Shown piece after piece: positions 1,640-21,729 of a stretch of 64,000 nucleotides of DNA (within the stretch, counting starts at the first letter, position 1; each line of letters opens with the position of its first letter). This DNA is from Klebsormidium nitens. Lineage: Eukaryota; Plantae; Klebsormidiophyceae. A model generated the notes under the pieces. It saw only the letters and a list, made by a program, of their open reading frames with translations, ran no database searches and had not been told where the DNA came from. A program made the translations under genes and the position numbers. Location: contig DF237103.1 in the NCBI GenBank assembly GCA_000708835.1, positions 105,185 to 169,184 on the forward strand. The letters run 5' to 3'.

Positions 1640-3889
1640 CCCTAGGTAAGACTCTCCATGGAAGCTGGCAGCGCAACCCCCCGCTGTCCTCCAGAATGAA
1701 CTCGAGGCGCTTGATACTGTCGCATAGTCGGGCTGCTAGCTGATATTAGATCACTGCCAGCGCAATCTGGCTTGCCTACCGTAGCTAAATGCTGCACAGT
1801 GCACAGCTACCTGATGCTGCAATGGCATCCATCGTTTCCTCGCAACAATGGCCGCGGCGCCCATATGATCCTCGATCTAACAGATCGCGAGCGCAACTGT
1901 TGACATCAACACCTTTCCTCAAGGAGGGGGGGGGGTTGGAATCTTCGCGGGAAGCTCGGAGCGCTCCACGACAAACTTTAACCGATTGAAGTCAAGAGCA
2001 AAACAGGAACCGTCGATTGGGATTTGACGGCTCGATGAGTGGTACCGAAAGTCGGAACCTTACCGGTTTTAAACGCCAAACTCAAGTGGTACGGTCAAGT
2101 GGGTATGTATCGTAACCTTCTCGGGCGCCGGTTTCGACGATACATTTTCCTCCCCGCTTTGAATTTGAGACGTATCGAACACCCGTCGAAAGCAACATGT
2201 TGTCCCTGCGTTCGAGGGGCCCGAGTTTGCATGAGTGATCCTAATCTTTCACAGTAGGTACGAAGTTTGAAATTTCCCGTGGCGCGGATCGATGCGTACG
2301 GTTTCGAAAGGTCCAGATTCAACCTCCTTCTAAGTCCAAATAGGTACCGGTATGCTATATTGCAAGTCTTCTTTTCACCCCCCCCTCAGACTGACGGCCG
2401 CCTGAAAGGACGGACTCTCCGAGTCCTCATCAACGGTGCAAATCAAATTCATCTATTAAATGTTTCCAACTTGTCTGATGTTCCAATCAAATTCATCTGA
2501 AGTTAGCCTGCGACTTGGCATGTGTCGGCGCCAAGAGTGACATGGCAACGGATGGCAACTAGGTACCTACCTAGAGGGATGTCTTGTTCTGCAGTTTTAG
2601 CCGGATTTGATGCAGCTGGTCCAAGTCCTGGCGCGGGCAGGAGCAGCATCCTAGCAGCATATCCTCATGTTAGAGCCAGTAGATCCAACCGTCCTGGAGT
2701 ACTATCCTGCCAGACCGAAGTTTGACATACGGTATCTAAATCCACTGCCTTGAATTACACGTGTGCATGTTGAACCGTCATTCTCCGATCCACACATGTG
2801 TCTCAGACGTCTTCAGAACTAAGAGGTGGAAGAGATTGGCTCACCATAACCTGACGCTTAAGAGGGTTTTTGAGGGGTGTGGAACATTGGCCAATGTTCT
2901 CCACATATAGGGTCTTCAATACTCGAATATATACGTATTATGTTTGCATGCAGATACACAAGTGTATCCTGCCGTAACCTACAGATTGTCAGTCTTCATT
3001 TGAAAGATAATTGTTTCAAGCTCCCACATATGCATTACAATTTTCATATCAGAATGATTCCTATATAATCGAGTTTGTGTGCTGGATGGTCCCGGTTGGA
3101 TCTGCCAGTCGTGCTGTATTTTGCCAGTCGTCGATATAGGTGATTCAATACCCGACGGTACAAGTAGGTCTCGTTGCTACCCGTCAGTGAGCGCCAATCA
3201 GATTTACCGTGTACCGAACCTGCGTCGTTCAATATGACTTCAAGTAATTTTGATGACCAGAAAAGGCTGAGACTTTATAGTTCCGACTTCGCCGATGAAT
3301 CTCAGAGCGAAGAAGTGCCACTCGACCGCGGAGACAATCTCTTAATTATACGCATAGAGGTCGATAACGAGTGTGGGTTACGACAGACATAGCGAGCAAT
3401 CATGCAACCAAATATAACTACATGCGGTGATGAACGATCGAGCGAGGAAAAGTTTTCAGAACTTCTAAACGTTCTGTAGCACCCACAGGCACATGCATCG
3501 CGCTGGCACTCTCTTCCGTGGATTTTTGCGCCACCCAGACCAGAGCCTTCGGCTTTGAACTAACTTTCGAACCCGATGCCAGGAATGATGCACATGGAAT
3601 CTGCTCTTAAGCAAGCATCTAACCCACGTACTAACATCTGACGCCATGACACTCGGACAGCACCGTTACATCAGGCTTTACTCCAACCATGTCCACCTTT
3701 TAGTGCAGGCTAAGAAGTTTGAGAACTTTTGGCAACAATTGGTGCCACTATTGTGCTTGGTCATTTGACACTTAGCAAAGCTTTGCGCTGATAAAGCTTC
3801 TCCACACAATAGCGGGAACTTTGAATCCTCCAATCAGTAGCGGGAACTTTGAAATGAATTACTGGCATAAAGAATCAGTATAAATGACG

Positions 3890-6800
3890 TTACTCTATCC
3901 TCAACCCGGGGACCCCCTTGAGCCCCATCATCCCCACGGTCCTCCTCAAAAGGGCGGGCGGTTCCGACATGCCGAGGCACTCTGTCGCATAAAAGTTCGC
4001 TTGTTGCACGAGATCCGCCTTGGACCAACCCAGGTTCTTGCAGAAGGTATTGTAGAACCCGAGCCATGCCACGTACGCCTGCACCAGAGTCTTCTCCTCC
4101 AAGCGCGACATGCCGCGTTGCACCTGGACGGAGAAGGTGCGGGTCAGAGGAGCAAACAATGCCGGGAGAGTCCGCTCAAGATGACTGGTGAATGATTGGT
4201 TGCTGAATAACTGATTCTGAGCGGGAGAACGCAGTCTTTCGAAATCTGCACAGGCATCGTCACTACATAACGAGAGGTGCTGGTCATTGAAACAAGTTAG
4301 AAGCCGAGCAGACTTCCCGCTGCCCTCTTCTGTTGTTCTTGCTTCTTTGCTGCCCACTTTTGGGGAGGTCTGATCGGTTGGCAAGATCCAATTCTGGGTC
4401 GAAATTCGATGTGTAAGTTACTTGCGATGGTCGGCTGCGGTTCTCACCACATCAGCAGGGCCATTGAGAGGATTCAATATTGCCTAACAGAAGTGGGGTT
4501 TGGTAACCCTTAAAGCAGGTCGCAGGGCTGCCTCTCGAGCAGTACGGTCTTGAGTATGCCGAGATTGATAGTTACGAATCTCAGATTGGGGCAGAAAACT
4601 TGGGGATGATTTGGGAAAAGTGACCTAAATTCTTTCCATGGTCGGAGGTGGCACAAGAAGGTTTCTGGTAGTCACCATTCTAAAAACCCATCAAACCAAA
4701 CGAAAAGCCAAAACTGGTGCTTCTGCTCACCTCTTGTCGGATGTCCGCCTCGATGGGCACCGGGCCGTATTGCTCCAGAGGCAGATCAGCGACTTGTTTG
4801 AGGAAGTACTTCTCGTAGGGCGCCAGCATGAGAATCCCCTCGCCCTCCTTCCCAGCACGGGCGGTTCGGCCTAGCCGATGGATATACTGGGCTTTGTCGG
4901 TTGGTAGGCCCACCTAGAGGAAACGAAGGAGCGGCTCAAAAAAGCTGCAAGAGCGTTAACGAGAAACACGTCGCACCGCGTTTCTATCTGAGCTGCCTGA
5001 GTCTAGGACACGGTGAGTTGCTGATCAATGGGGATCACAATCGCCTAAAATTTCCGCCTAGAGCGAACGAACGAGCGACTTAGCTGAGGTGAAAGGAACA
5101 ACGAGGGTGACAGGAAGAGAATCACAACGTCTACCTACTTGGACTGCCTGATTCTGGGACTTAGTGAGTTTTTTTAGGATTCGAATTTGCTGCTTTTTCT
5201 CGGGACAAAAAGACAGATGCGAAGAAAAGACGGAGCTTCAGATCTGGATCTTTGGGAAAAGGTTCAGAGAAGCTGACCGTCAAATACACAAGCTTCCCTG
5301 AGCACTCAGCTTGCACAAGTCACCACAGAAGCGCAGGAGTCAAGCGCCCCCTCATAGGGCATTCCAAACTCCTATCAAACGGACTCCACTCCCTAAATCG
5401 CTACCTAAGGGTCAACGGCTTCGAAGAAAGGCAATTGTTTTGGGCAACAGCAATCTTCACACGCCCTCCTTGGAGCACCGCAGAGCCGCCTACTGAAAGC
5501 CCTGTCTCTGTCCACTGATCAAAACACACAACCACCCGCACGTCAGTTCACCTGTAGCACCATGCTGACGTCAGGGTAGTCGACGCCGCGCGCCGACACG
5601 TCGGACGTGAAGAGTACGACGCGCGAGCCCTTGCGGAACTCCTCGGAGGTGCGTGTGCGGGCGGCCTGGCTCTTGCGCGAGTGGATCTCGAGCGCGGGGA
5701 AGCCAATGCCCTGGAACAGCTGCGCGTACAGCTGCGTGGCGCGGGCGGTCGTCAGGAAGACGAGGACCTGCGGGGGCGAGGTGACGTAAATGTCAGCAAT
5801 AACGCCGCAGTGTCTGGAGGTGACGTCATGGTGGTTGAAACCAACAGGATACAGAAAGCAATCGTATGGTGCGCGTACAGCTGCATGGCGCGTGCGGTCG
5901 TCAGGAAGACGAGGACCTGCGAAGTGACGTCAGTGTGTTGATAAGTGACGTCGATGGTTGTGCGCATTTGGGGCCATGATGAGAGAAGCTGCGCATACAG
6001 CTGCGTGGCACGGTCCGTCGTCAGGAAGACGAGGACCTGCGGGGTGACGTCACAGTGATAGAAAGTCACGTCCCCGTTCGAAAGTAATATCACAGTGGTT
6101 GTCAGGATGATTAGGGAGTGACGTGAGATCAACAAGAGAAAATGGAGGCGAAGGGGCCTGCCATCGGTACAAGGGAGCGCCAAACGTGTTCCCGTGCACT
6201 TTGAGAGGCCTGCGCGTGATCAACAACCGTCGAAGTGCTAGTCCCAGAACCAAGAGCGGTTATCTAGTCTGCACAATTGGGAGGCTTCGGGAAATTGGTT
6301 CTGTCAGAGAAAACAGAGCTGACAATTGGGAATTTGGAACGAGAAGAAAGAGGTCGAAGAGCTGAAAACTTCTCACCTTGAAGTTCCTCTCCTCCCGGAT
6401 GTGTTGGCGCAGGATGTGGAAGGTGGCGCCGATTTGATCGGCCAGAGGAATGACAGCGTACGATTGCTTCACCTGCGGCAGAGCAGCGCACACAGTAGTT
6501 AGTGGATAACCCGATGGTAACCAGACACGGTTCGAGGAAGATTGGACGGGAAGGCAAGAAGTCGAACAGTTAACTCGTCGCCTGCACAGCTGTGAACAAG
6601 CCCGATGGCTGATGCCAAGGAGGTCGTGCGCATGGACGAGTCGAGTGCAATGCAAAATCGTCAACGGCCAACAAAGCGCGATATGGTGCCGGGCTCTCGG
6701 TATGCCCAACTGCTTAGTCAACGCTGTAAAATGTACGAGGCCCCTCCAAATACATCAAAGCACAACCGCAAAACCAAGGGCAGATTATTCGGCTGAAATA

Positions 6801-9800
6801 ACTCTAACCAAGATTCCGGAAACGTTGCTTTCAACAGAGACCGGACTCGAACCAAAGAAGCCAGGACCTGACTTCTCTTCCTCCCGTATCCTCAACTCCA
6901 GCAGAACGAAGATCCGAGGCGACACATACAAGTCAAAGTCGACGCATTCACAAGAGATTCAAAAGCACAGAGAGACCGCGCAATTAAAAGGAGACGCATC
7001 GCTTACCTGAATGTTGGTCTGCTCCGTCTCCTCCCCAACAGTGTCAATGAACGCGTGGTTGGGCTTCAGCGCCAACTTTGACACCGTGTGAACTTGCGGG
7101 GGAATCGTGGCAGAGAACAGGAGTGTCTGCCGCTGACCCGGCAGGTAGCGCAAGATCTTCTCGATGGCGGGGCGGAAACCCATGTTGAGCAGGTTATCGG
7201 CTTCATCCAGAATGAGCACTTTGAGGCCCTTGAGGCGCTGCGGGACGGACGGCGTGTTGTCCAGATGGTCTTGGAGGCGGCCCGGGGTGCAGATGAGGAT
7301 CTGCGGAAAACAAGGTGGGGGTACACGAGTTAGAGAAAGACTGGGGGGGTCTCTAGCCGAATCCATAAGGATGTGAAAGAAGAACAAGTTGGAAGTGTTG
7401 ATGGAGCTGCCTCGAAGGGGGCCTGCGTTGCAGGCGGTGACTTCCAAGAAGCGAGAGGAAGGCTCAAACAGAACAATCTAAAGACTGAGGTTCATCATTT
7501 CAACCCCTCCAAAGTAAAAAAAGAAGCAATGAACAATTCGAATGCCCCGACGAGCAAACGCATTGCGAAGTCTGTTCATGCTGCTCCATAGCTGGCTGCT
7601 TTTGCGATTCAGAGACAATAGCATGTCAGCATAATGAGGTTTCGCAGTTCAAGCTTCACGACGTGGACTTTTTACCCCTTCCATGAAGACCGAATGGAAA
7701 CCGCAAGAGCGTAGGTCGTGATCGCCTTCAAAATTCGTTCCATGTTTCCCCATGAAAAAAAAATCGGTTGAAGATAGAGCAGAACATTTCCAAATTGACG
7801 TCATCAGGGTAATCCGTTAGAGTGGCCGTAGGATGTGCACGTTCTCATTGGGTGTCACGATGTCGCAAGGCCCCTCCACAAGGCTCCTCCGGATGGCATA
7901 CTGTAAGTTGCTAAGCGAGTGTGACGTCCACCAAATGCCGACGCTTACTTTAGAAGGGTGACCGGACAGACCAGCAGAATGGTTGAGAAGGCTCACTTCT
8001 GCCGGCTGACTCTCCAGCCTGCGCCGGTCGCTGTTGATGTTGGAGCCTCCAAAGATGATCTCGGACCGCAGCGGGTGATACTTGAGCAGCGCCTTTGCCT
8101 CCGCCTCGATCTGCTGCGCCAACTCGCGTGTCGGCGAGATGACCAGCACCTCGATATCTGGGTTGGAGCTGCGCCGGCCCCCGCGAGCGAGGATCCTCTC
8201 GATGGCAGGTATCTGCCGGGAAAGAAGGGGGGTGAGTCGAGTCATCGCTGAATTCAGGTGGAGTGTCATTCAGAAACCTGGTTGGAGCCTACTTGAGCTG
8301 CTTGTCCGCATCAGAGGAACATAGCATTTTGTGTGAACTACTGACGAGGTTGTCGAGGCGGACTTAGACACTCACAAGGGAAGGCAGTGATAAGCATTTG
8401 ACATTCAAATGCAGTCCACCCCAACGTGCGACTTTGACAGGCTGACAGCTCTTTAAACTTTTGCTGGGACCCAGGTCTCAAAACACACCCCCTGCACAGC
8501 CCTATAGACCAGGTGAACAGAATCCGCCCAAGCCAAGTGAAGAAGACTTCCGCCTATGCCAATTGAAGGAGACTTCCCGATCTCCAATAAATTTGGGCCA
8601 TCACCTTCCAACTGAACGACCTCAGCTTTGTACGGGCTTGACGGGGCGCATAGGCAGGTTGCAATGATGTCTTCGGAGACATCTTTTGCCAGATCTCAAA
8701 ATCGGCAGCAAAAACCTTCATTCTGTGTGTTGATAAATCAGCTGAAGGAGCTCCAAAATAGAAAGTAATGGAAGCCCCAGCTTCATCACGGTTCTAGCAA
8801 ACCTTTTAATCACCACCTTGACAAGGGCAAGCTGGCAGGGAACAATCTTGGGGCCTAAGCATGAGCTGTCCGCTCAACCACGTAAGAAGGTTTCAGGAAT
8901 TGACTTGAGCTGATCTCGCACTCACCAAGAAACCAAGCGTCTTTCCAGTCCCGGTTTTGGCTTTGGCCAGCACGTCCTTCCCATCCAAGCACGCTGGGAG
9001 AGTCGCCTCCTGAACTACCGTCATCTTCTCGTATCCAAGGTCCTCGTGCAAAGCCTTGATTGTGGGGGGTGAGAGGTTGAAGGAATCAAACCTGCACACA
9101 CACATGCCCACAATTTGAGTATGTCAGTACAGGCCCCCAAGCTGCTAACACACCCTTTCTTCGCCTACAAGATCTCCTGGCGGTTGATAAGCCATAGTTT
9201 TCATATCTGCAATGATGCCATTTTGGTGAGATCTGCTGATGACGCTGAAGTTGACCAACCGTGCGAAGGAGTCTGGTAATGGTAAAACCCTAACCCTAAT
9301 TTGGCACTAACATGCATTCCTGCACCACACCACCCTGCCATCGCAGCTGAAATCACATACTGACCAGCTTTAGACCCAATTCCTACACAGCGTAACCAAC
9401 TCCTATTGTCTCTGATTCATAAGATATTGTCCCTCACCTTGTCTCTGTTATGAAAGCTGGGTTGCCCCCGCTCCCCCCTGTGGTAGATCTCTCTGCATCA
9501 ACTGCAGGGCGGTCTTCCTCCCCCTCTGACTCTGACAGTGTCTCGTCAATCAGCTGGCTTTGCGCTGGAGGCCGCCTCGAGACTGGCGGAGCTCTTCTTT
9601 GGTGCTGCTGAACAGCTGCAGCTGACATCGAACCACCTGGCGGCCCTCGTTTCCTCTCCCCAGACCCCCCCCCAACAGCACGTCCATTCCCCCTTTCTTC
9701 AACCATCCCCGAGCCTCGCCCGTTTCTTCCCCCGCCCCGACCGCCACGCCCAAAACCATTGCCCCCTCTCTCTACTCCAGCCCCATTCCTTCCATACCCG

Positions 9801-10255: not shown

Positions 10256-10639
10256 ACTGAAAAAGAGAGTTCAGAGATGGCTGCTTGTGGAGCTTGACAT
10301 TGTTGAGCAGTGGTTGAGAGAACTTAAGCGGATTACGCGGAAGATCAGATTCATACTTCAGCCCTAAGAAGATTTAGAAAGTAGAAAGTAGAAAGTTCTA
10401 ATTTCTGAAGGTTCCGTTTCCAGTGGGCGTGGCCTAGTGCCAGCTGCCCAGCTGCCTGATGGGAAGTGGTGCAGTGCTGTGCAAGTGTTGGTGGCATTGC
10501 ATTTGTGAAACGAGACATTGTCTTCTGAATCTTTGAAGATTGAAATTGACTTCAGCCCCAGCTTTGTTTTGACTTCGTGAACGCGCCCATTGCATTCGGC
10601 ACTCCCAGCAATTGCACCAACTTCGTTCTACCAGGCAAG

Positions 10640-12670
10640 ATGTTGAGGCGCACAGGGCTTCAGGCGCTTCGCAATGCTCTGAAGGCGGCTAGAGCGAGTG
10701 CCACCATTACCAGCCCGAGTGTCAGCGGCCGCTACGCCGCAGATCTGCCAAAGGGTTTCGCAAGCATTGCAAAGAGGTCAATTTCGGGAGCAGATGTGAA
10801 TGTGAACCCAGGCTTTGCAGTGGGGGCAGTTCGTTACTTCGCAAAGGGCGCAAAGTCAGACGGTTTGGCGCGGGCACTGGATCTCGAGATACAAGACCAA
10901 GAAAAGCAGTATGTGTCACCTAATGTGAGCAGAAGTCTGTCCATTATTGTTGTCTGTGGGCTCGCAAAAAGTTCAAATCACTTTAGCAATACAATTCTGC
11001 TGCCTTTTGGCGACTATCAGGAGAAACAGAGAACCTTGTGAATCTCAGAAGTTGTTTGTGCTTGGTCAAACTTCGTCCACTTTATTTTTCGCTTCTGAAG
11101 GCACAGCGTACGGTGAAAAGTCCGTTGCGTTGTTAGTTGTAGAAAAGGTGGTGCAGCAGGTGCAAAATCAGATTTTGCGGGAACCCTTATGCAATCACGG
11201 CTTCCCCAATCTGGAAGTTAAGACTTCCGCTCCACACTTGCAGACCAACTTTGTTTTGCGGTTCAAAATTCAGCAGCTTCCACTCTGAAACCACACTGTC
11301 ATGGTCCTGCTTTGCAATCTTACAAGTATGAGGCCTGTACTTTCGTGTTCATGAGCTTGTTATAAGTTACAACGCGAAGCCTTCAATTTCCTGGTCATGA
11401 GGAGTTGCAAAGAACCTGCTCTGTGGCACAACTTTTCCCCTGACTGCATGCTGACTTGCCTGCTTTTCACTCCAGTTTCATGTCCCACAAGAAACCAAAG
11501 CAGTTCTGTGAGGCTCGCAGGTGGAGCTCCCCCATGGCTACAAGGTCGTCGAGAGCCCTGGTAGCAGGAAGCTGACAGTGCGCAAAATGCATGGGAACGA
11601 AGAAATCGAGCTCATGACATACGTCGATCCTGAGATGGATGCTGCATACGCGGAGAGCGCTTACAATGATCCTGATGAAGAGGGAGATGGTGAAGAGAAT
11701 GCTGGGACTCCCCTGCACTTCATGGTCAAGGTTACAAAGGTACGCACCTGAGTTGCACTTTCTGTTTCTGATTGAGGGACTTCAATCCAAAACGCCGTTG
11801 CATTCTCCACTCTGATTGTCTGTCTGTCCAGTCAAAAGTGCAGATCTTATCTGTCATACCAGGCGAGAAACAGGGTGGGCGCCTCTGACAGTAGAATGTC
11901 TTGCTGAGCCTTGTTCTGCCGGGAATGTGAGCATTCAGCGATGGGAACTCCTGAGGTGGCTGGACTCTGAAAGCTCCTGCGTTGCTCATTCACAGACCTC
12001 CCGGCCTCTTCATTCGACAGTGATCTGTGTGACGAGTTGCGTCGGGTGTATCAATGGCTCTGCCGGAAAGTTGACTTTGTGAGGAGGCAGGTGCCTGACA
12101 GAAGACGCTCTTACACAGGGTGGCGAAGATCGTACCCTGGTCTTCGATTGTTCCTTCGAAGGAGGAGAGATCAGCATCGACGCAGTGCATGTTGAGGACC
12201 CCAGCATAAACGAGAGCGATGCCTATCCGGGACCGGAGTACAGGTAAGAACGTATCTTGATTGCTTGGGTGATGCGTCAGCTTGATTTCCAGGCGGTTGG
12301 TGCATACAACTGCACAGCTCTGAGCGGTCTGTACTCTGCTTCAAATGACTCCCGAACAACCATGCCCTACAGTTCCTTCACGGCAGAAGCAACTCGAGCA
12401 CCTTGCAAGCCCCTGTTTCTGCGCTGCTCTGCCCGCCTATCCTCTTCATTTGTTGCTTGCAACTGCGCTGCCGTCATGTGCTGACGTTTCAATGTTCAAT
12501 CGTTCAACAGCGAGCTGGACGAGCGACTGACACAGAACCTCAAGAAGTATCTGGTAGATCGTGGTGTGGACAACGACACTATGGAAGCCTTTGCCGACCT
12601 TAAAAACGACAAGGAAGAGAGAGAATATGGCAGATGGCTGAAGGAGGTGAAGAGCTTCGTCTCAAAGTGA
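10640..12670 (+). CDS. MAM33: Mitochondrial glycoprotein family (MAM33/p32/C1QBP-like) acidic matrix protein; about 262 aa
   Basis: Exons 10640-10924, 11521-11739, 12119-12243 and 12511-12670 total 789 nt. Arg/Ala/Ser-rich presequence (MLRRTGLQALRNALKAAR), then LDLEIQDQE, TLVFDCSF, YPGPEYSELDERLTQNLKKYLVDRGVD and KEEREYGRWLKEVKSFV. Confidence 0.9.
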
Positions 12671-13644
12671 TCGCTGTCGAGCAAGAGATAAGCGTTTGCA
12701 AACAAAAACAGTCAAACTTAAAAGGCAGAAAAGGAAGGTATGTCGTGGTGAGGGAGGAAGTGGGCAACTTCAGTAAGGGGTTACTTTGCGAGAATCTGTC
12801 TTAAGTCACTCGCTGTGTGAGATTGGCACCTTTGACGGTAGCTTCCAACCGGATTGGCTGCAAGATATGATGGACAAACATCGAGATTTGGGAACGTTAC
12901 TGCAAGCTACCGTCGAGCAGATTATATGCAATCTATAGACAACACTATCATATCAGTGTCTACTGATCTGTTAATCTGGTCAGCCCTGACCGTCGCTTCC
13001 GGGACAACTCAAAATGCGTATCTGATATCTCATGGACGGTCGAGACACAATGTTTTATAATTCTCAGCGTGGATCCAGAACTTTGCAGACACGGCCGAGG
13101 CTCCTTCCGAAAATCTAGCTCATTCTTATTCTTGCCGCTTGCGATGTAAAGCTTCAAATCATGTGTCTGACATGACCCTTTCAAGATGCCTCTGCCGCTT
13201 TCTAACAAATGGCAATGAAATGCAACCTCGCGCGACAGCTTTCCATTTGCGCGCGTGCTCAAGAATCGCGTATATGTCGGGTTGCCTGCACATCGTGTGC
13301 ACTTTTACACTTTGCGGGTTGTAGTCATAATAGACCCCCAAGCTCATAATTGAAGGCCACACGGCCTGGTTCATGCACCTTGATGTAATTGGACCGTGGC
13401 GCGGTACTGCGTCGGAGTAGGCTAATCAAAATGCACAAAAAGATTGAAATGCATTCGGAAAAGGCCTCAGGATACTGAGATGCATCAGCATGCTCATTAC
13501 ACTGAGAAGGTCACGTGAAGCTCCGGGCGTGACTCACAGGTCAAAGTTCTCAGATTTGGTCGATGCTCAGTGATTGATGCGCAACATCAGATCCGATGCA
13601 CCTTGAAGGATCAACAAGTAGACTCTTGTTCACGGCTATGAATT

Positions 13645-16432
13645 CTAATCTTCCATCGGAGTCACAAGTTGCTCGTCGTTCGCCTCTGCCGCAGTGCAAA
13701 GCGGTCTTGCGGCAGCTTTGAGCTCGTATTGGTGCCCGCAGGAGGGGCAATCCAGCACCTGGTCAGCCTGTATAGGCACCAATAATAGAGGGTGCTCAGC
13801 AGAGACCATATCTTGGAGGAATCTCGAAGACAACCCACCATCGGCAGCTCCTGAAGACGGACTGATTGAACTTTCAGAGCTTCCAACTAAGCCTTCTCGC
13901 ATGTCCCTTGTCAATGATTGTCTTATCTTATCATCAGCGGGGGCCGTAACGCTGCGAGCCTGAGCGCTTTGTGACACTTACCTGCAGCACTTCGAGGCGT
14001 TGGCGGCAGTCTGCAGCGTACTGCTTCTCCTGGCCTTTGTCCTCCGCCACCCCCTCCATCTCTTCTAGCAAGGCCGCCGTTTGATCATCGCTGGCAAACA
14101 TCCTGACGTGGTCCTGCCCAAATAGGATCAGCCGTTGTGAATCTAATAAGCGCTGGCGTCTGCGTAAGTGCTGACTACTATAAGGCTTCGATACGGTGCC
14201 TTTTTATGCCTTCTACAGTCTCTCTCGGAGAATAAAAAGAGGAGAATTTTTTTAAGAAGTGCTTCCTACGAATCGCATCCAATAAGCAAAGAAGCTACGC
14301 TGGAACGAAGGTGCCTTACCGGTAGACCATCAATCTGCCTGATGACTTCGATGACATCCACGTTCACCTGCGCATAGGAAAAATATGGATGATAACCAGA
14401 CTTTCAGCACAGCCTCATAACAGAAGACGTGTTCCTCATTTGATTTCCAACCCGAAGCGAAGGCTTTCTTAGTTTCAATGCGTCACAGAAGAGTATGACT
14501 GCGGATTCAGGTGGAGGCATTCTTGACATTCGTCCTCACCTCCTTCATCTGCTCCTCAAGAGTTCGTGCGTCCTCCTCCAAATCCTGCAACTGTTTTTCA
14601 ACCGAAGCCTTCTCGCCGGTCGCTCGAGCTTGTTCGCTTCGCGCTCTCCTTAGCTGCAAAGAACCACTTTTTGTATCTGGGTCTGCTTAACAATAAGATT
14701 TGTTACCTCGCAAAATGATTATGATGCAGCTGTGTCTCGTCATGATTTGCAGTTGGTTGAATTCCCTTCAATACACCATTAAGATTTGACTCCTGATCGC
14801 ATGATACCCCGCGGAATACATTACCTGATCTTGGAGTTCCTTGGACGAGTCAGCCAAAGCTGTGTTCCCGCCATCGCTTTCTGCATAGGCGGAACACGAC
14901 ACGTCTTATATAACCTGTTACTCAAGCGACTTCTCGCTTCCCTGGAACCATTACAGCCGAAGCAGAATTACACAGGTTTTGTAAGGAGAATACACATGAC
15001 TCACCAGAGACATTGCTCGTCAGGTTCTCAATCACTTCATCAATCTGCGGACATCAAAAGTAGATTCTGAGCAAATGATACAGTTGTGTCAAAGTGGAAA
15101 ATTATACTCGCACAGTGTTATGGACTAGAACACCAAGTGATCGTACTATTTCAGCACAATCACTTACAGAGTTCCAACTGCAGACCCTCACGTGCAGCTA
15201 GGTTTGATTGTGAACATTGCTGTGACTCCCCGAAAACGATACTCTCGCGCCATGCGAAAGTCCAAATCGTTCATAGTTTTACCTTGCGGACTGACAGTGC
15301 CAGTTCTCGTGACATGTAGTATCTCTGCAATTGAAACAACAAGAAGCTTCAGTACGGCAATGAAGAGCATGCAAAAGAAGTCAAGAAATCAGTCCGCAAT
15401 GCTGGAATACGGTATGCCAAGGAATGGTGATGAAGCATTGGACAGAGGGTAGGTCGTCAAATTCCATTCCGTTTCTTTCGACAAGCATTATATTCTGGTC
15501 TGACCTTGTAATCCTCCAGCTGGGACAACATGCCATCGTAGGCCGTATCCAACTCTTGTTCCTTCGAGCGTTGCTTGATCGCATCAGCTTCAAGACCCGT
15601 CTTCATCAACTCTATTGCCTGCGTGTTGAAAGAGGGGGAGGATAGCTCATTCACGAATTGCCGTTGAAACATAGCTAGACGCGTATGCTATAGACATGGT
15701 CAAACTGGTACAAGTCGAGGTCTTTGCAGAGCTTTCCTACCTGGTCCAAAGATGCGACATCCAGATCCGCCTGCAGCTGCTCCTGCTGTGCCGCCAGGAT
15801 CGTGCGGCCGATGGTCCCAGAATCGTTCAACAACTTCTCCGTTGTTTGTGAACACTCCTTGATCTCCCATGAGACTGCACTTTGAAGCGATTCAAAGCAA
15901 GCACTTCTGGAGAGAAATATTGTAGCTTTTGAATGAGCTGGTTGATACTTTCTATTCAATCCACTCCGTATTGGACACTCGACAAGCTTCCTTCCTTTGA
16001 ATAGAGAGATACTGACAATGTCAAATCGCAGCAGATTCAAATCACGATTCGATGATTCGCTGTCCCTCACAACTATCATGTACCGTGCCCAGACAATGAG
16101 AAACTACGAAGTTAGAAAAATATTGGCTTTGATTCTCTCTTTCAGGGCGTCGGAACACACGTGTCTGGATGTATGCATGTGATTGAGGAAAAGGAGATGG
16201 TCTGCTCAAAGGATGGTTTTTGCTACGTGGTCTTAAAGTTTTGGCCGCTCACTTCGATCCAAGTCCCGTTGGATTGAAGTTATTTCGGTCTGCTCCTGCT
16301 GCTTTCTGGCGCTGATTTCTGCCGCCTTGTCCTCATACTCTGCAACAAAAAGAGAAGGCAGAAACCGAGAAGGCTTCGCATCTGGCACCTTGGTTGTATC
16401 TTTGACATTTCTTGGGAATCAAAAATCCAACG

Positions 16433-16481
<49 letters not shown>

Positions 16482-16708
16482 TTGGTCAATTCGTAGTAAT
16501 CTGCTTCAATTCGAGGACCTCAGAGTCGCGTTCTAAAACGTACATGCATTCAGTCAACTTTCTTGAATGTGATTCTACTTAATTATGCCGGTCCTTTATC
16601 ATGGAGATGTTGATATGTCTTGCTCGGCAGCCACCGTCGGTGGCACCGAGTACCCTTACCTGAGATCTGCATCCGAAGAGACCTGACATGCTGGAGAAAA
16701 CCTTCCAT
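13645..16708 (-). CDS. SCEP1: Coiled-coil protein with C-terminal CxxC, similar to the Arabidopsis synaptonemal complex central element protein SCEP1 (At1g33500); about 312 aa
   Basis: Eleven phase-compatible exons: 16708-16660, 16339-16253, 15874-15741, 15618-15505, 15324-15283, 15044-15005, 14880-14825, 14653-14540, 14367-14320, 14113-13982 and 13767-13645 (939 nt). The N-terminus MEGFLQHVRSLRMQISEYEDKAAEISARKQQEQTEITSIQRDL and the C-terminus LEEMEGVAEDKGQEKQY...LDCPSCGHQYEL resemble my recollection of At1g33500. Orthology is unverified. Confidence 0.7.
16438..16479. repeat. (CT)21 microsatellite in intron 1 of the SCEP1-like gene
   Basis: Perfect dinucleotide run seen directly. Confidence 0.97.
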
Positions 16709-18131
16709 TTTGGCGGAGTTGCAAAACACAAAGCCTGCCGGCCAGACAACAAATTTCCTTACAAGCTAGACGTCAAAGCAAGCTGGGGCCTATTAGAGAA
16801 TCCTTGTCGCACAGACTTGGCAAACGAGGCTGCAGTCTGATCGTGGCAAAGAGCCCGAGAGCTGATCTAAGCTGCCTTCGGGGCAAGAAGGTCTGGTGCT
16901 CGTCTTTCCAATCAAAGCGTTCTATCGTGATTTCAGCGAAACTTTGCTCATGAAAGACGTAAACTCAATCCGACTCTGCTTGTTGAATCCATTGGATGTT
17001 TAGCTGCAAGTGATCTTGTATAACCTGACCTAAGGTGCAGATGCATCCTCCCGTCCAAACAGTTCAAGCTGCTAAGTTATGACTTGAGTCATAGCTTATG
17101 ACACATACGGTACCTCTTACTCGCGTTGACTTCGAAAGGGGCTTCGATCAATCTTGTCCAGAGAAATAAATCCTCGTATTGCTTTCAAACCTGAGCTGAT
17201 TTTATAACGAAGGGCTGTATACGTAAGGCCATCGATGGATCTCGAGGGACGGGTGGGGTTACCGTGTTCCTCAGGGCGGGCTTGGGTGCAAAGCGCTTCG
17301 GTGTTCCGGTTACTATGGTGTTGAACCAGGCTGTTGCACCTGGGCACAAGATTGAAATGATCGTACCTGACGATCAGACATAAGTATTAGAAAATAGCCT
17401 ATCATCAACAGGTTTTATCATAGGCCATGCAGAAAGGATTTTGCGCAGTACCGCGATATCTGCGATTAGCTTCTAAAATGTGCCGGCCCGGCCCAACATC
17501 TGTGTTATGATGACCCTCGAATGGGGCTATATAGAAGAAGGCCAATTAAGTATTCCTGCTACTTGCATTGCAAGCGCTCAGTGATCAGTTGATGCAACAT
17601 GCAAATCTTGTCAGCACGTTTTGTTCGCAATCAAATCCCATGGGCTATGGGTTCGGAACGATCAGACAACGAGAGACTTCAAAGGGCATCCAACAGGTCC
17701 CTGGCCCGGCGACGCATTATGCAGTTACCTCATATATGACGATCGGAACTGATCGAGCCTGCCACCATACATTTAGGAGATTGAGCGTTGCGTACGAAGA
17801 AGCACGCAGTCCGTGAGCCCAGGCTTGCGACGCTCTTGCATGCTTGATCTTATAAGCCATTCAAGTAGGAGCGCGAGAGGCATAAGACTTATTCCTTGCA
17901 TGCACCAATGCGAGGTTAAAACATTCTGAGCACGTATAGCTCACAGGCGTGCCGCAAACATTTAATGGACGAAAAGCTTCGACAAAGTCCCCGACACCAT
18001 CAATCAACACGTTTGTGAGAATCTACAGCGCTTTAGTCGCCAAGAACGTACGCTCGGCTCAGTGGCAATTGAGAAGCTGCGGATTGTGGGAAGCGTGCCT
18101 ATCAAACGAGGCTCAGTGGCCAGCTTCTCGA

Positions 18132-21100
18132 TCACGTTGACAAGTCCTGAGGGCTGTTTCTGGATTTATCATACTGCAGTACCGCCGCTGTACTTTGGAT
18201 GAGCAACACCGCCTGAAAAGAAAAGTACGTTCACTGAGTAGGCACAATATTGGCCTCGTCAGAGCTGCCCAACATACGGCACTCCGATTCAGACTGCTGA
18301 AGCTACTGGCCAGATGCCAACGCGCTCAGAATCATGCGACTCCGTCCGATCGAGAAGGTTCATCAGAAGCCGTTCACAACATCGACTAGTGCCCCCACTA
18401 AATCTGGTTTATGGTCCCATGGGACTTTCCAGAAGAGCGATACACTTGCTCAGCGTTGATGACCTAAGGGACGCTGCAGAAACGAACTGCCTTAGCGCCT
18501 GTCTGCTGAGACATGAGGGTCTCCAAACCCCGCGGGTCATATAAAGCCCGGCCCAGTTGATGGACCAACAAACAAGGCCTGAACAGTAAGTCGAGCACAA
18601 GCCTTTAGATCGATCGACGCCGGCCCTCACCTGCGCGCATGCGTAGACGAGCGTCATGGCATAGAAGAAGTTCGCGTTCCCCACGTTCTTCCAGATCCAC
18701 AGGTTGTACATGACCGGCCCGATGACGCTAGCCACCAGGAGCCCGTTCACACCGACAAACACGAAACGCATCTGCCGCAGCTCCCGGGCGAAAGCGGGGA
18801 GCAGCCCCAGGTAGAGGGCTGCGTCCGAAACGGACGGGTACGATTTGAAGATGGACGTCAGGCCGAGGATGACGTAAGCGAGGAAGAGGGGCCGGTGGTG
18901 GAATCGGATGGTGAGGGGGGGGAGCATGATGACCAGGACCAGGTAGTGGAAAACGAAGAGGAAGAAGGTGCGGAAGTGGTCGAAGACCTCTGCGAAGAAG
19001 TACCTGGCAGGGAACAGGGAAGGAAGGATTCAAGGAACGCCGGACCAATTCTTCGACGCAAGCCCGGAAAGAAACAACTCCACCAGCACCTAGAGCCTTA
19101 GGAGTCTGCGGATCGGCTCTGATGGGATGCTAGTAACGAGAGCAGGGCCGAGAGAACAGAGGCGTAGAGGACGCCACTTCATTAGTGAAACCTCAAGAGG
19201 CATACGCTCTTCCAGACCAATTAGTTTCGGTCGGCAAACAGGCGTAGCATCAAGTTGGTTGGAGAGGAGGCGTAATCGTGAAAAGTTCGCCAGAAAAGTT
19301 TGACGGTCTCTGGCAGCCTTCATGGAGAAACTGATGATGGATACAGCAGACTACACGAGCGGCACCGCCGAGAGAAGAAAACGCCTCGCAACATGTCCTG
19401 GGTCCGATAAAGCATCAAGAGAATCTTCAACGGCTTAGTGGGTCATTAAGAAGCCTGGATTCGCGCCACGGAGGCCTGGCAGAAGGAATCTGCGAGACGA
19501 GATAGATACGCCCCAAAAAGGGGGCCATCGTTCCTCACTGCAATGCACGTCGTATTCCGAGCGAGAGAGTGTTGAGGAAGTATTTTGAGCAAGCTATCGA
19601 ACAGCACTTCGTCACTATTCAACCAAAACAGGTATGTGAACCTTTTATAAGGTTGTCTCACTTTTTCGTTTTCGTAACTCTGGACGATTCATTTGATATC
19701 AACGAGTGGTTGAAATGCAGTCGGTCTAAGAAGAAGGATGACGAAAGACAGCCTGGCTACTGCACGTTGTAAGAAGAGTTGTCCCTTTCTTGTAATATGA
19801 CAGCCGTGATGGAAGATCGCCGAATCGTTTTAAATCATCAGCAAGACTCGAAGTTGAGACCAACACCAAAGACTGAGATCATCGAGACCACCACGGAAAG
19901 TCGAAACGGTTTCTGTCTTGGAGGCTTACCAGAACAGGCCGATGTTCGGAGTGAGGTCATCAGCGGCCAGGATGAAGCCGTGGGTAGCTTTCCACATTTG
20001 TAGCAGAGACCCCCGCTCTCCGAGCAGGACCTTGCAGAGAGCCAGCAGAGCAACTGTCCAAAAACCTAACCCGATGGAGAAGAAGGCCGCTAACAAAATG
20101 ACGCCTGAGCCTGTCCTGGATTCTCTGTATGTGCTGATGTCAACCATAGCGGGACGCTTTTTAGTAGGGGGCTCGTTCTGGTTACGAGGAGCTATGTCTA
20201 TGGTGTCGGAGGCAGGCGGTGGTTGGCAAGGCTTTCGTCGATCCAGACCTTGGTGCAGGAGAAGGAAGCATGGAACAATGAGCAGGGCTGGATGTAGTGT
20301 GAGATGACTGGCTAGGACGAGTCCAAAAGTGGCTAGGGGGATGCTCCCTGCAACACACAGAGTGAAAAGGTCTAGGAATGCATGCTGTGCTTCCGTACAA
20401 GAAGAGATTGTCAAGGGAGTCTGGCTAGAAAGGAGCTCAGACTCCAATCCCAATGATTGCAAGAACAGTCCTACGTTAGCAAGGGTTCGGGGGTGTTCAG
20501 ATTGCCACTAGTCCCTCTTCATTGTTGTGGCAAACCCCTATGCTTACATTCAAGCAGGATCTCTCTTAGCTGTACTTTTGATTGTACTCCTTGCCTCTGG
20601 TATCTAAGCTTGCCCACCAGAAAATGCTAGGCTTAAACGATAGACTGGGGCCGCTTGATAAAGGCAGAGGAGGCACCAGACAGAAAGGAAAAGTCGGAGG
20701 AGGTGGAGTCTTTTGTTTCAGACGTTTTCTCACGATATTAAGAAACACCTTGGAAGGGCAAAGTATACTGCACTCACCATTTACTGAGCCATACAACGCC
20801 AGAAGGACAGCACAATTGTCAATGGAACCTGTTGAGCCCCCAATGCAAGCAGCTATTGTGTACGGATTCAATAGATATAAGATTCCAGCCAAGTCATTAA
20901 ATGGGGCGTCACCGCTGGCGCCGTCGTGAACATATGCGCTCTTCCTCTCTTCAGGTGAGGTCAAGTCTAACTGCTTTGCTCCATGAGCTTCTACAGCTGA
21001 ACAGCTTGGCACATCTTGTCCCGATGCTGACTCGAAGTTTCCTGGCTTGCAAGCTCTAAAAACAATAGCTTGAAGGAGGACTGCTGCTAGAAGATCAGCG

Positions 21101-21729
21101 GCGATGCAGAGCAAGGTGCCTGAGATTTTTGACAATCTTGCATCTTGTCTCTGAATGGCGCCAATGACAGGCTGCAGCAGATACACATAGCAAGGAGATG
21201 CATGATATGCCCAGCCTGCAAGGACAAAGAAATTCGATCAACCCAGCTTCAGATTCGAACAGCAGGGCACAAGCATAGAATGCACGGCAGCCAATTCAGT
21301 GCCAAATGAGCGTATCTCAGCTGTGACACATGAAGAAGTGTCTACAAGCTGTTCACCCTTCATTAAGCAGAGCGCCCATCAAGTGGGCTCAGAATGAAAA
21401 GAATTGCCTTAAGCCCATCAGATTTTCTTGAAATATCTGATTGGAGAGATACGCAGGATCAGATTCAACACACCACTCAATCACAGCTTTGAAGATGTGT
21501 CTATTCATCGCAACCAGCTCAAGTCACAGTGCAATGGAACATCACCTTCATAAGGAGACATCCCATTGTCAATCAACCATCGGGCTTCCGCAAGCCTCTT
21601 TAAGCTGTTGGTAGGAGTCACCACTTCCACTCGGTGCTGCAACACCTTGGAGGCGCCGCTCAGACTGAATGTCAGTCGGATTGAAATGGCTGCGACAAAG
21701 CCTACTAAATGAAACCACTTTGATGCCAT
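18132..21729 (-). CDS. PIGU: GPI transamidase subunit PIG-U (GAB1); about 497 aa
   Basis: Exons 21729-21546, 21215-20778, 20347-19930, 19003-18631 and 18212-18132 total 1494 nt. Motifs: [68 protein letters not shown] and NANFFYA. Confidence 0.93.

Follow-up and report, generated by a model that had tools for sequence, protein, structure and literature searches.

The 64,000-nucleotide (nt) stretch of Klebsormidium nitens DNA analyzed in this work (contig DF237103.1, positions 105,185 to 169,184; hereinafter, the window) carries on its minus strand, at 16708..13645, a gene of 11 exons joined in frame that we rebuilt from the raw sequence. We are fairly confident that it is the K. nitens counterpart of Arabidopsis SCEP1, a homologue that is very probably orthologous, and that it would do the same job in a meiosis so far undescribed; on sequence grounds, the gene is homologous to Arabidopsis SCEP1 and shares its gene structure. 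SCEP1 and SCEP2 are said to have been described in Arabidopsis by Vrielynck et al. in 2023, with homologues reportedly occurring across angiosperms. According to three papers (PMC12283363, PMC12711579, PMC13170185), in Arabidopsis and Brassica the two proteins form a heterodimer that sits within the synaptonemal complex, in its central element, and is required for the polymerization of ZYP1 between homologues, and the loss of the pair leads to the absence of both synapsis and crossover interference. The K. nitens gene is already public as a hypothetical protein; no statement connecting it to SCEP1 occurs in the literature text consulted, although Extended Data Fig. 4 of PMC12283363, which covers K. 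nitens, may already mark the gene.

For the gene model, region 13400-17000 was translated in the three minus-strand frames, and the coding-looking stretches were joined at canonical splice sites. The spliced coding sequence, 939 nt long, starts with the ATG at 16708, ends with the TAG at 13647-13645, and encodes 312 amino acids (aa). All ten introns are of the GT..AG type and 122-378 nt long, and every acceptor is a CAG preceded by a pyrimidine-rich run. The first-pass annotation of this DNA had proposed 11 short exons (40-134 nt) joined in perfect phase and coding for about 312 aa; our reconstruction gives the same structure, with start and end coinciding exactly, and contains the algal peptides quoted there. 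The gene had also been described as hidden from the open reading frame (ORF) track and, indeed, it is absent from the ORF lists of the window. In the analyses that follow, searches were carried out with single exons or with the public protein GAQ83600.1, while joined translations were used for translation, for the ratio of non-synonymous to synonymous substitutions (dN/dS), and for pairwise alignment.

The Arabidopsis sequence was recovered starting from the cloning primers for SCEP1 and SCEP2 given in supplementary file 3 of Seear et al. (PMC12711579). The SCEP1 primers imply a protein that begins with MEEYLQYM and ends with EYSVGLD, and the SCEP2 primers one that begins with MAGIDTQ and ends with NSVQVLT (PMC12711579). 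The algal N-terminus, MEGFLQHV, resembles that of SCEP1 and not that of SCEP2; the latter, the heterodimer partner of SCEP1, is also a small coiled-coil protein of the central element, but its termini are unlike those of the algal protein. The 24-nt gene-specific part of the SCEP1 forward primer was scanned exactly against metagenome contigs, and two contigs with the SCEP1 start were retrieved, that is JGI Ga0041059_1003115 (L002, 8616-10527) and Ga0041060_1000742 (L003, 1-1513). In L002, the forward primer matches at 8616, while the reverse primer core, with a stop codon after it, is found at 10504; since both primer sites and the stop lie on it, L002 is, as judged from these matches, the Arabidopsis SCEP1 locus (presumably At1g33500, the code given in the first-pass annotation), evidently present as plant host DNA in a metagenome. 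Exact patterns derived from primers are able to retrieve plant loci from this metagenome collection. The resulting Arabidopsis model consists of nine GT-AG exons (49, 87, 134, 59, 55, 105, 48, 120, and 60 nt), for a total of 717 nt and 238 aa, and stop codons leave little freedom for the choice of splice sites between the fixed start and stop. The three Arabidopsis peptides quoted in the first-pass annotation were all found in L002, apart from three wrong letters, of which two are N-terminal and the third is at residue 16.

The two proteins match from residue 1 to the C-terminal motif. In blastp comparisons, the expectation value (E) was 1.4e-12 with composition adjustment (residues 1-108 of the alga versus 1-111 of Arabidopsis) and 4.5e-20 without it (1-288 versus 1-235), while phmmer gave 35 bits. 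The Smith-Waterman score was 184, against 57 +/- 9 for sequences shuffled either globally or within windows of 15 residues; this corresponds to a z score of about 13.5-13.7, and none of 1000 shuffles reached the observed value. Since algal exons 1-4 and Arabidopsis exons 1-5 add up to the same length of 384 nt, an ungapped alignment of residues 1-128 is possible, with 35 identities and 71 positives (about 27% and 55%); this segment scores z 9.3, or z 7.4 when the shuffles preserve the heptad pattern, and no other offset competes with it. The C-terminal 100 residues taken alone give z 5.3, and a 46-residue block across the last shared intron, which takes in the Cys, Gly, and Tyr of the terminal motif, is significant at p<5e-5. 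Thus, the whole-length similarity to SCEP1 claimed in the first-pass annotation is borne out as a collinear and significant one, and its shared terminal Cys pair followed by QY or EY finds its counterpart in the aligned Cys/Gly/Tyr motif.

The comparison of intron positions, which had been proposed together with the identification, points in the same direction. The algal introns fall after nucleotides 49, 136, 270, 384, 426, 466, 522, 636, 684, and 816 of the coding sequence, and the Arabidopsis ones after nucleotides 49, 136, 270, 329, 384, 489, 537, and 657. The two organisms share the introns after nucleotides 49, 136, 270, and 384 exactly, in both position and phase, and three further ones (those on both flanks of a 48-nt exon, plus the last intron) are equivalent in the alignment, so that seven of the eight Arabidopsis introns are shared with the alga in position and phase; the remaining one is specific to Arabidopsis and lies inside the equivalent of algal exon 4. 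Exon lengths match accordingly in five cases: 49, 87, 134, 114 (59+55 in Arabidopsis), and 48 nt. With about one intron per 94 nt, the four exact coincidences would, by our own estimate, be expected by chance with a probability of about 1e-8. The alga has three more introns, around exons 5-7, in a 46-residue stretch absent from Arabidopsis.

The public counterpart of the gene was found through exon 10, which in an exhaustive search of 1.84 billion representative proteins returned two matches, both from the Klebsormidium lineage. The first one, 100% identical, is GAQ83600.1 / A0A1Y1HY49 ('hypothetical protein KFL_001540180', 298 aa) from K. nitens, by which the host, guessed to be Klebsormidium-like in the first-pass annotation, turns out to be K. 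nitens itself; the second one is a 91-aa ORF fragment from a related alga, with 93% identity. This fragment led to L001, a 36-kb contig in the Logan assembly of run SRR23617307, in which all 11 exons occur at unchanged length and without gaps, each boundary retaining its AG or GT. The exons of the two algae are 75-97% identical and the introns 36-55%; the proteins are 85% identical. With a dS of 0.43 and a dN of 0.076, the dN/dS ratio is 0.18, and it falls to 0.065 in the first 127 residues, whereas the middle 46-residue stretch (exons 5-7) is the fastest-evolving part of the gene. The gene is intact and, as judged from these substitution rates, under purifying selection.

GAQ83600.1 is the product of the same gene, being identical to the 312-aa model over ten exons and differing from it by the 14 residues of exon 5; the public entry thus comes without this conserved 42-nt exon and without a functional name. 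In L001, exon 5 shows 83% identity, against 45% for the flanking introns, keeps its length and its AG/GT sites, and differs from the K. nitens one by three synonymous and three conservative changes. Since exon 5 stands out in L001 as a conserved island, it is best read as coding, the public model being either incomplete or lacking an in-frame cassette exon (its length is a multiple of three).

The single exons, all on the minus strand, reflect this pattern. Exon 1 (16660..16708, 49 nt) has the start ATG at 16708 and ends in phase 1, with the length and phase of Arabidopsis exon 1; exon 2 (16253..16339, 87 nt) and exon 3 (15741..15874, 134 nt) likewise share length and phases with the corresponding Arabidopsis exons, the former being conserved in L001, as exon 1 is, and the latter showing 93% nucleotide identity to it. 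Intron 1, between the first two exons, harbors a (CT)n microsatellite of about 22 units (16437-16480). Exon 4 (15505..15618, 114 nt), 97% identical to L001 at the nucleotide level, equals Arabidopsis exons 4a and 4b together, which the extra Arabidopsis intron splits. Three exons have no Arabidopsis counterpart: exon 5 (15283..15324, 42 nt, 14 aa), kept in L001 and missing from GAQ83600.1; exon 6 (15005..15044, 40 nt), conserved in L001 and part of the variable middle region; and exon 7 (14825..14880, 56 nt), the least conserved of all (75% nucleotide identity to L001). Exon 8 (14540..14653, 114 nt), which codes for the second long coiled-coil helix, aligns loosely with the 105-nt Arabidopsis exon, while exon 9 (14320..14367, 48 nt) has a 48-nt Arabidopsis exon with the same phases at the equivalent place. 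The last 30 aa of exon 10 (13982..14113, 132 nt) align without gaps to the end of the 120-nt Arabidopsis exon, and exon 11 (13645..13767, 123 nt including the TAG) carries the motif C-x2-C-G-x2-Y; exons 8-11 are all conserved in L001.

Concerning the protein, a single-sequence AlphaFold2 (AF2) prediction (predicted template modeling score, pTM, 0.25) is almost entirely helical, with helices at residues 2-82, 86-127, 129-142, and 148-209; the per-residue confidence (predicted local distance difference test, pLDDT) exceeds 90 for residues 1-70, and a small beta hairpin is predicted at the Cys pair. A heptad scan agrees with a coiled coil, so that the algal protein, as plant SCEP1, is a small coiled-coil protein. 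Its architecture comprises 128 conserved N-terminal residues, a lineage-specific middle, and a short conserved C-terminal Cys/Gly/Tyr knuckle. The arrangement C-x14-C-x2-C-G-H (three Cys and one His, residues 250-270 of GAQ83600.1, exons 10-11) is shared by the two algae, unlike a fourth Cys located downstream of it; Arabidopsis has C-x-C-G at the aligned place. The Cys/His cluster might form a small metal-binding knuckle. Arabidopsis SCEP1 resembles the algal protein in being a small all-helical coiled coil, collinear from residue 1 to the C-terminal motif, and in seven intron positions and phases. It differs in size (238 aa versus 312 aa), the algal protein containing 46 additional residues in its middle (exons 5-7) and extending about 21 aa further at its tail, and in the Cys pair, which is C-x-C in Arabidopsis and C-x2-C in the alga.

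On these grounds, the algal protein would do the job of SCEP1 in the central element of the synaptonemal complex, in a meiosis not described in this alga; by analogy with the plant protein, it would bind SCEP2, localize to the synaptonemal complex, and be used in meiosis. We favor this function because the gene is under strong purifying selection and because a K. nitens homologue of another protein of this system, SCEP3, has been published (GAQ79536.1 / A0A1Y1HSJ6, used in alignments in PMC12283363 and PMC12711579).

Several observations weigh against the attribution to SCEP1. No Pfam family was found for the algal protein, either with six exon peptides or with GAQ83600.1, all the matches to coiled-coil and zinc-ribbon families being below threshold. 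Word-index searches of 5.8 billion proteins with residues 1-130 and with the whole protein, the latter also at E up to 10, returned only the protein itself, and the exhaustive search with exon 10 revealed, among 1.84 billion proteins, Klebsormidium sequences and no distant kin. Moreover, when single Arabidopsis exons were compared with the 64-kb window by tblastn, only exons 1 and 2 picked their algal counterparts, the other ones being too short: the best match of Arabidopsis exon 1 in the whole window is algal exon 1, and that of exon 2 is algal exon 2 (E 1.4e-4). In the reverse direction, with the algal protein compared with L002 by tblastn, again only exons 1-2 stood out individually. The significance of the single exons, calculated on the ungapped alignment fixed by exon boundaries, was p<5e-5 with plain shuffles and 0.005 with heptad-preserving ones for exon 1, p<5e-5 with both for exon 2, 2e-4 and 0.04 for exon 3, 0.003 and 0.08 for exon 4, and 0.012 and 0.37 for the 48-nt exon (algal exon 9). 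The signal of exons 3, 4, and 9 is therefore largely the heptad pattern and, in the middle exons, much of what is conserved appears to be coiled-coil register. The weakness of the signal exon by exon explains why ordinary database searches miss the relationship between the alga and Arabidopsis. In addition, the Arabidopsis SCEP1 protein used here is a model that we made from genomic DNA. To our knowledge, no sex has been described in Klebsormidium. Finally, the family appears to have a patchy distribution, SCEP1/2 being reported as absent from Marchantia and Taxus in PMC12283363.

Among the other possible explanations, the one that best withstands the data is that the gene is a true SCEP1 homologue with a non-meiotic role, for instance as another chromosome or coiled-coil scaffold, the synaptonemal role having arisen later or having been lost in this alga. 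The strong purifying selection acting on the gene in two Klebsormidium-lineage genomes, in which, as far as we know, no sexual cycle has been described, might be read in this way, as might the middle 46 aa (exons 5-7) that lack an Arabidopsis counterpart. However, K. nitens also keeps a SCEP3 homologue (PMC12283363, PMC12711579), and a cryptic meiosis is the simpler reason for an alga to retain several proteins dedicated to the synaptonemal complex; we regard the non-meiotic role as unlikely.

It might also be argued that the resemblance is a chance or compositional likeness between two unrelated small coiled-coil proteins, since both are rich in E, Q, L, and K, most of their single exons are inseparable from noise, the algal protein gives sub-threshold Pfam matches to many coiled-coil families, and the ESM Atlas lists animal CCDC172 and SYCE1 clusters close to it. 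Against this idea, the E value remains 1.4e-12 after adjustment for composition, and none of the shuffling schemes produced a score as high as the real one; the alignment starts at residue 1 and continues ungapped for 128 residues, the C-terminal motif is independently significant, and four intron positions are identical to the base, with three more being equivalent. A fortuitous likeness is, thus, very unlikely. Lastly, the gene might be a meiotic relic in decay within an asexual lineage, given that no sex is known to us in K. nitens and that our 11 exons disagree with the public annotation; this is also very unlikely, as the reading frame is open, two genomes have all the splice sites intact, and a dN/dS of 0.18 is found at a dS of 0.43.

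If the gene is indeed the SCEP1 orthologue, the family would date back to the early streptophytes, near the base of the land-plant lineage. We lean, though only slightly, towards the idea that SCEP1 is older than the split between Klebsormidiophyceae and the land-plant lineage and that K. nitens has a full plant-type central region, including SCEP1 and the published SCEP3, and a cryptic meiosis with synapsis. The presence of a homologue in Klebsormidium, with nearly the same exon-intron structure, suggests that the reported absences of SCEP1/2 either reflect sequence searches that fail on a fast-evolving coiled coil or correspond to real losses. As one more gene for a synaptonemal complex-specific protein, it would also count in favor of hidden sex in a model alga. 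From a practical viewpoint, the algal sequence is a remote reference point with which SCEP1 profiles can be improved, and our model amends the public one, from which exon 5 is missing.

A bolder idea is that the algal sequence, being less derived, bridges plant SCEP1 and animal SYCE1. The ESM Atlas clusters nearest to the algal protein are three unnamed Streptophyta families (221, 270, and 291 aa, with feature scores of 0.94, 0.92, and 0.92), in keeping with the attribution to plant SCEP1, and two streptophyte clusters are nearest or near-nearest by structure as well; the animal SYCE1 and CCDC172 clusters come next, with feature scores of 0.86-0.92. SYCE1 (PF15233), which has the same role in the synaptonemal complex as SCEP1, is similar to the algal protein in size and in being a coiled coil, and its feature scores are 0.90 and 0.86. 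PF15233 is not among the best 25 of the 37 Pfam families matched at E up to 10, the weakest of these 25 having an E of 3.9. The link to SYCE1, for which the Atlas feature scores of 0.86-0.90 are the only basis, appears to us quite doubtful.

Other families were considered and set aside. The best Pfam match of the algal protein is the BRE1 coiled coil (PF08647), which covers residues 6-59 only and scores 20.6 bits, below the cut-off of 27.9; the HP0958-like zinc ribbon (PF02591) reaches E 0.13 and 12.8 bits, below a cut-off of 29.1. The faint zinc-ribbon matches fall on the Cys pair near the C-terminus, in exon 11. A sequence search of the PDB with the algal protein gave nothing, 3na7 appearing at E 6.3. 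OsBVF1, described in PMC5447885 as a 283-aa OmpH/coiled-coil protein needed for double-strand-break formation, with a Klebsormidium homologue only 13% identical to it, was taken as presumably unrelated to SCEP1.

As regards the surroundings of the gene, in L001 PIG-U domain calls lie 5' of it in the same orientation, and a MAM33 call is found past its 3' end (2870-5988, 11969-12346). The window has ORFs at the places corresponding to these flanking genes, i.e., 18409-21186 (minus strand, on the 5' side) and 10577-11041 (plus strand); with the window ORFs matched by position, the neighborhood appears to be conserved between the two Klebsormidium-lineage genomes. About 5 kb past the 3' end of the algal gene, at 6959-8269 on the minus strand, lie ORF fragments with DEAD-box helicase motifs, which suggest the presence of another multi-exon gene.

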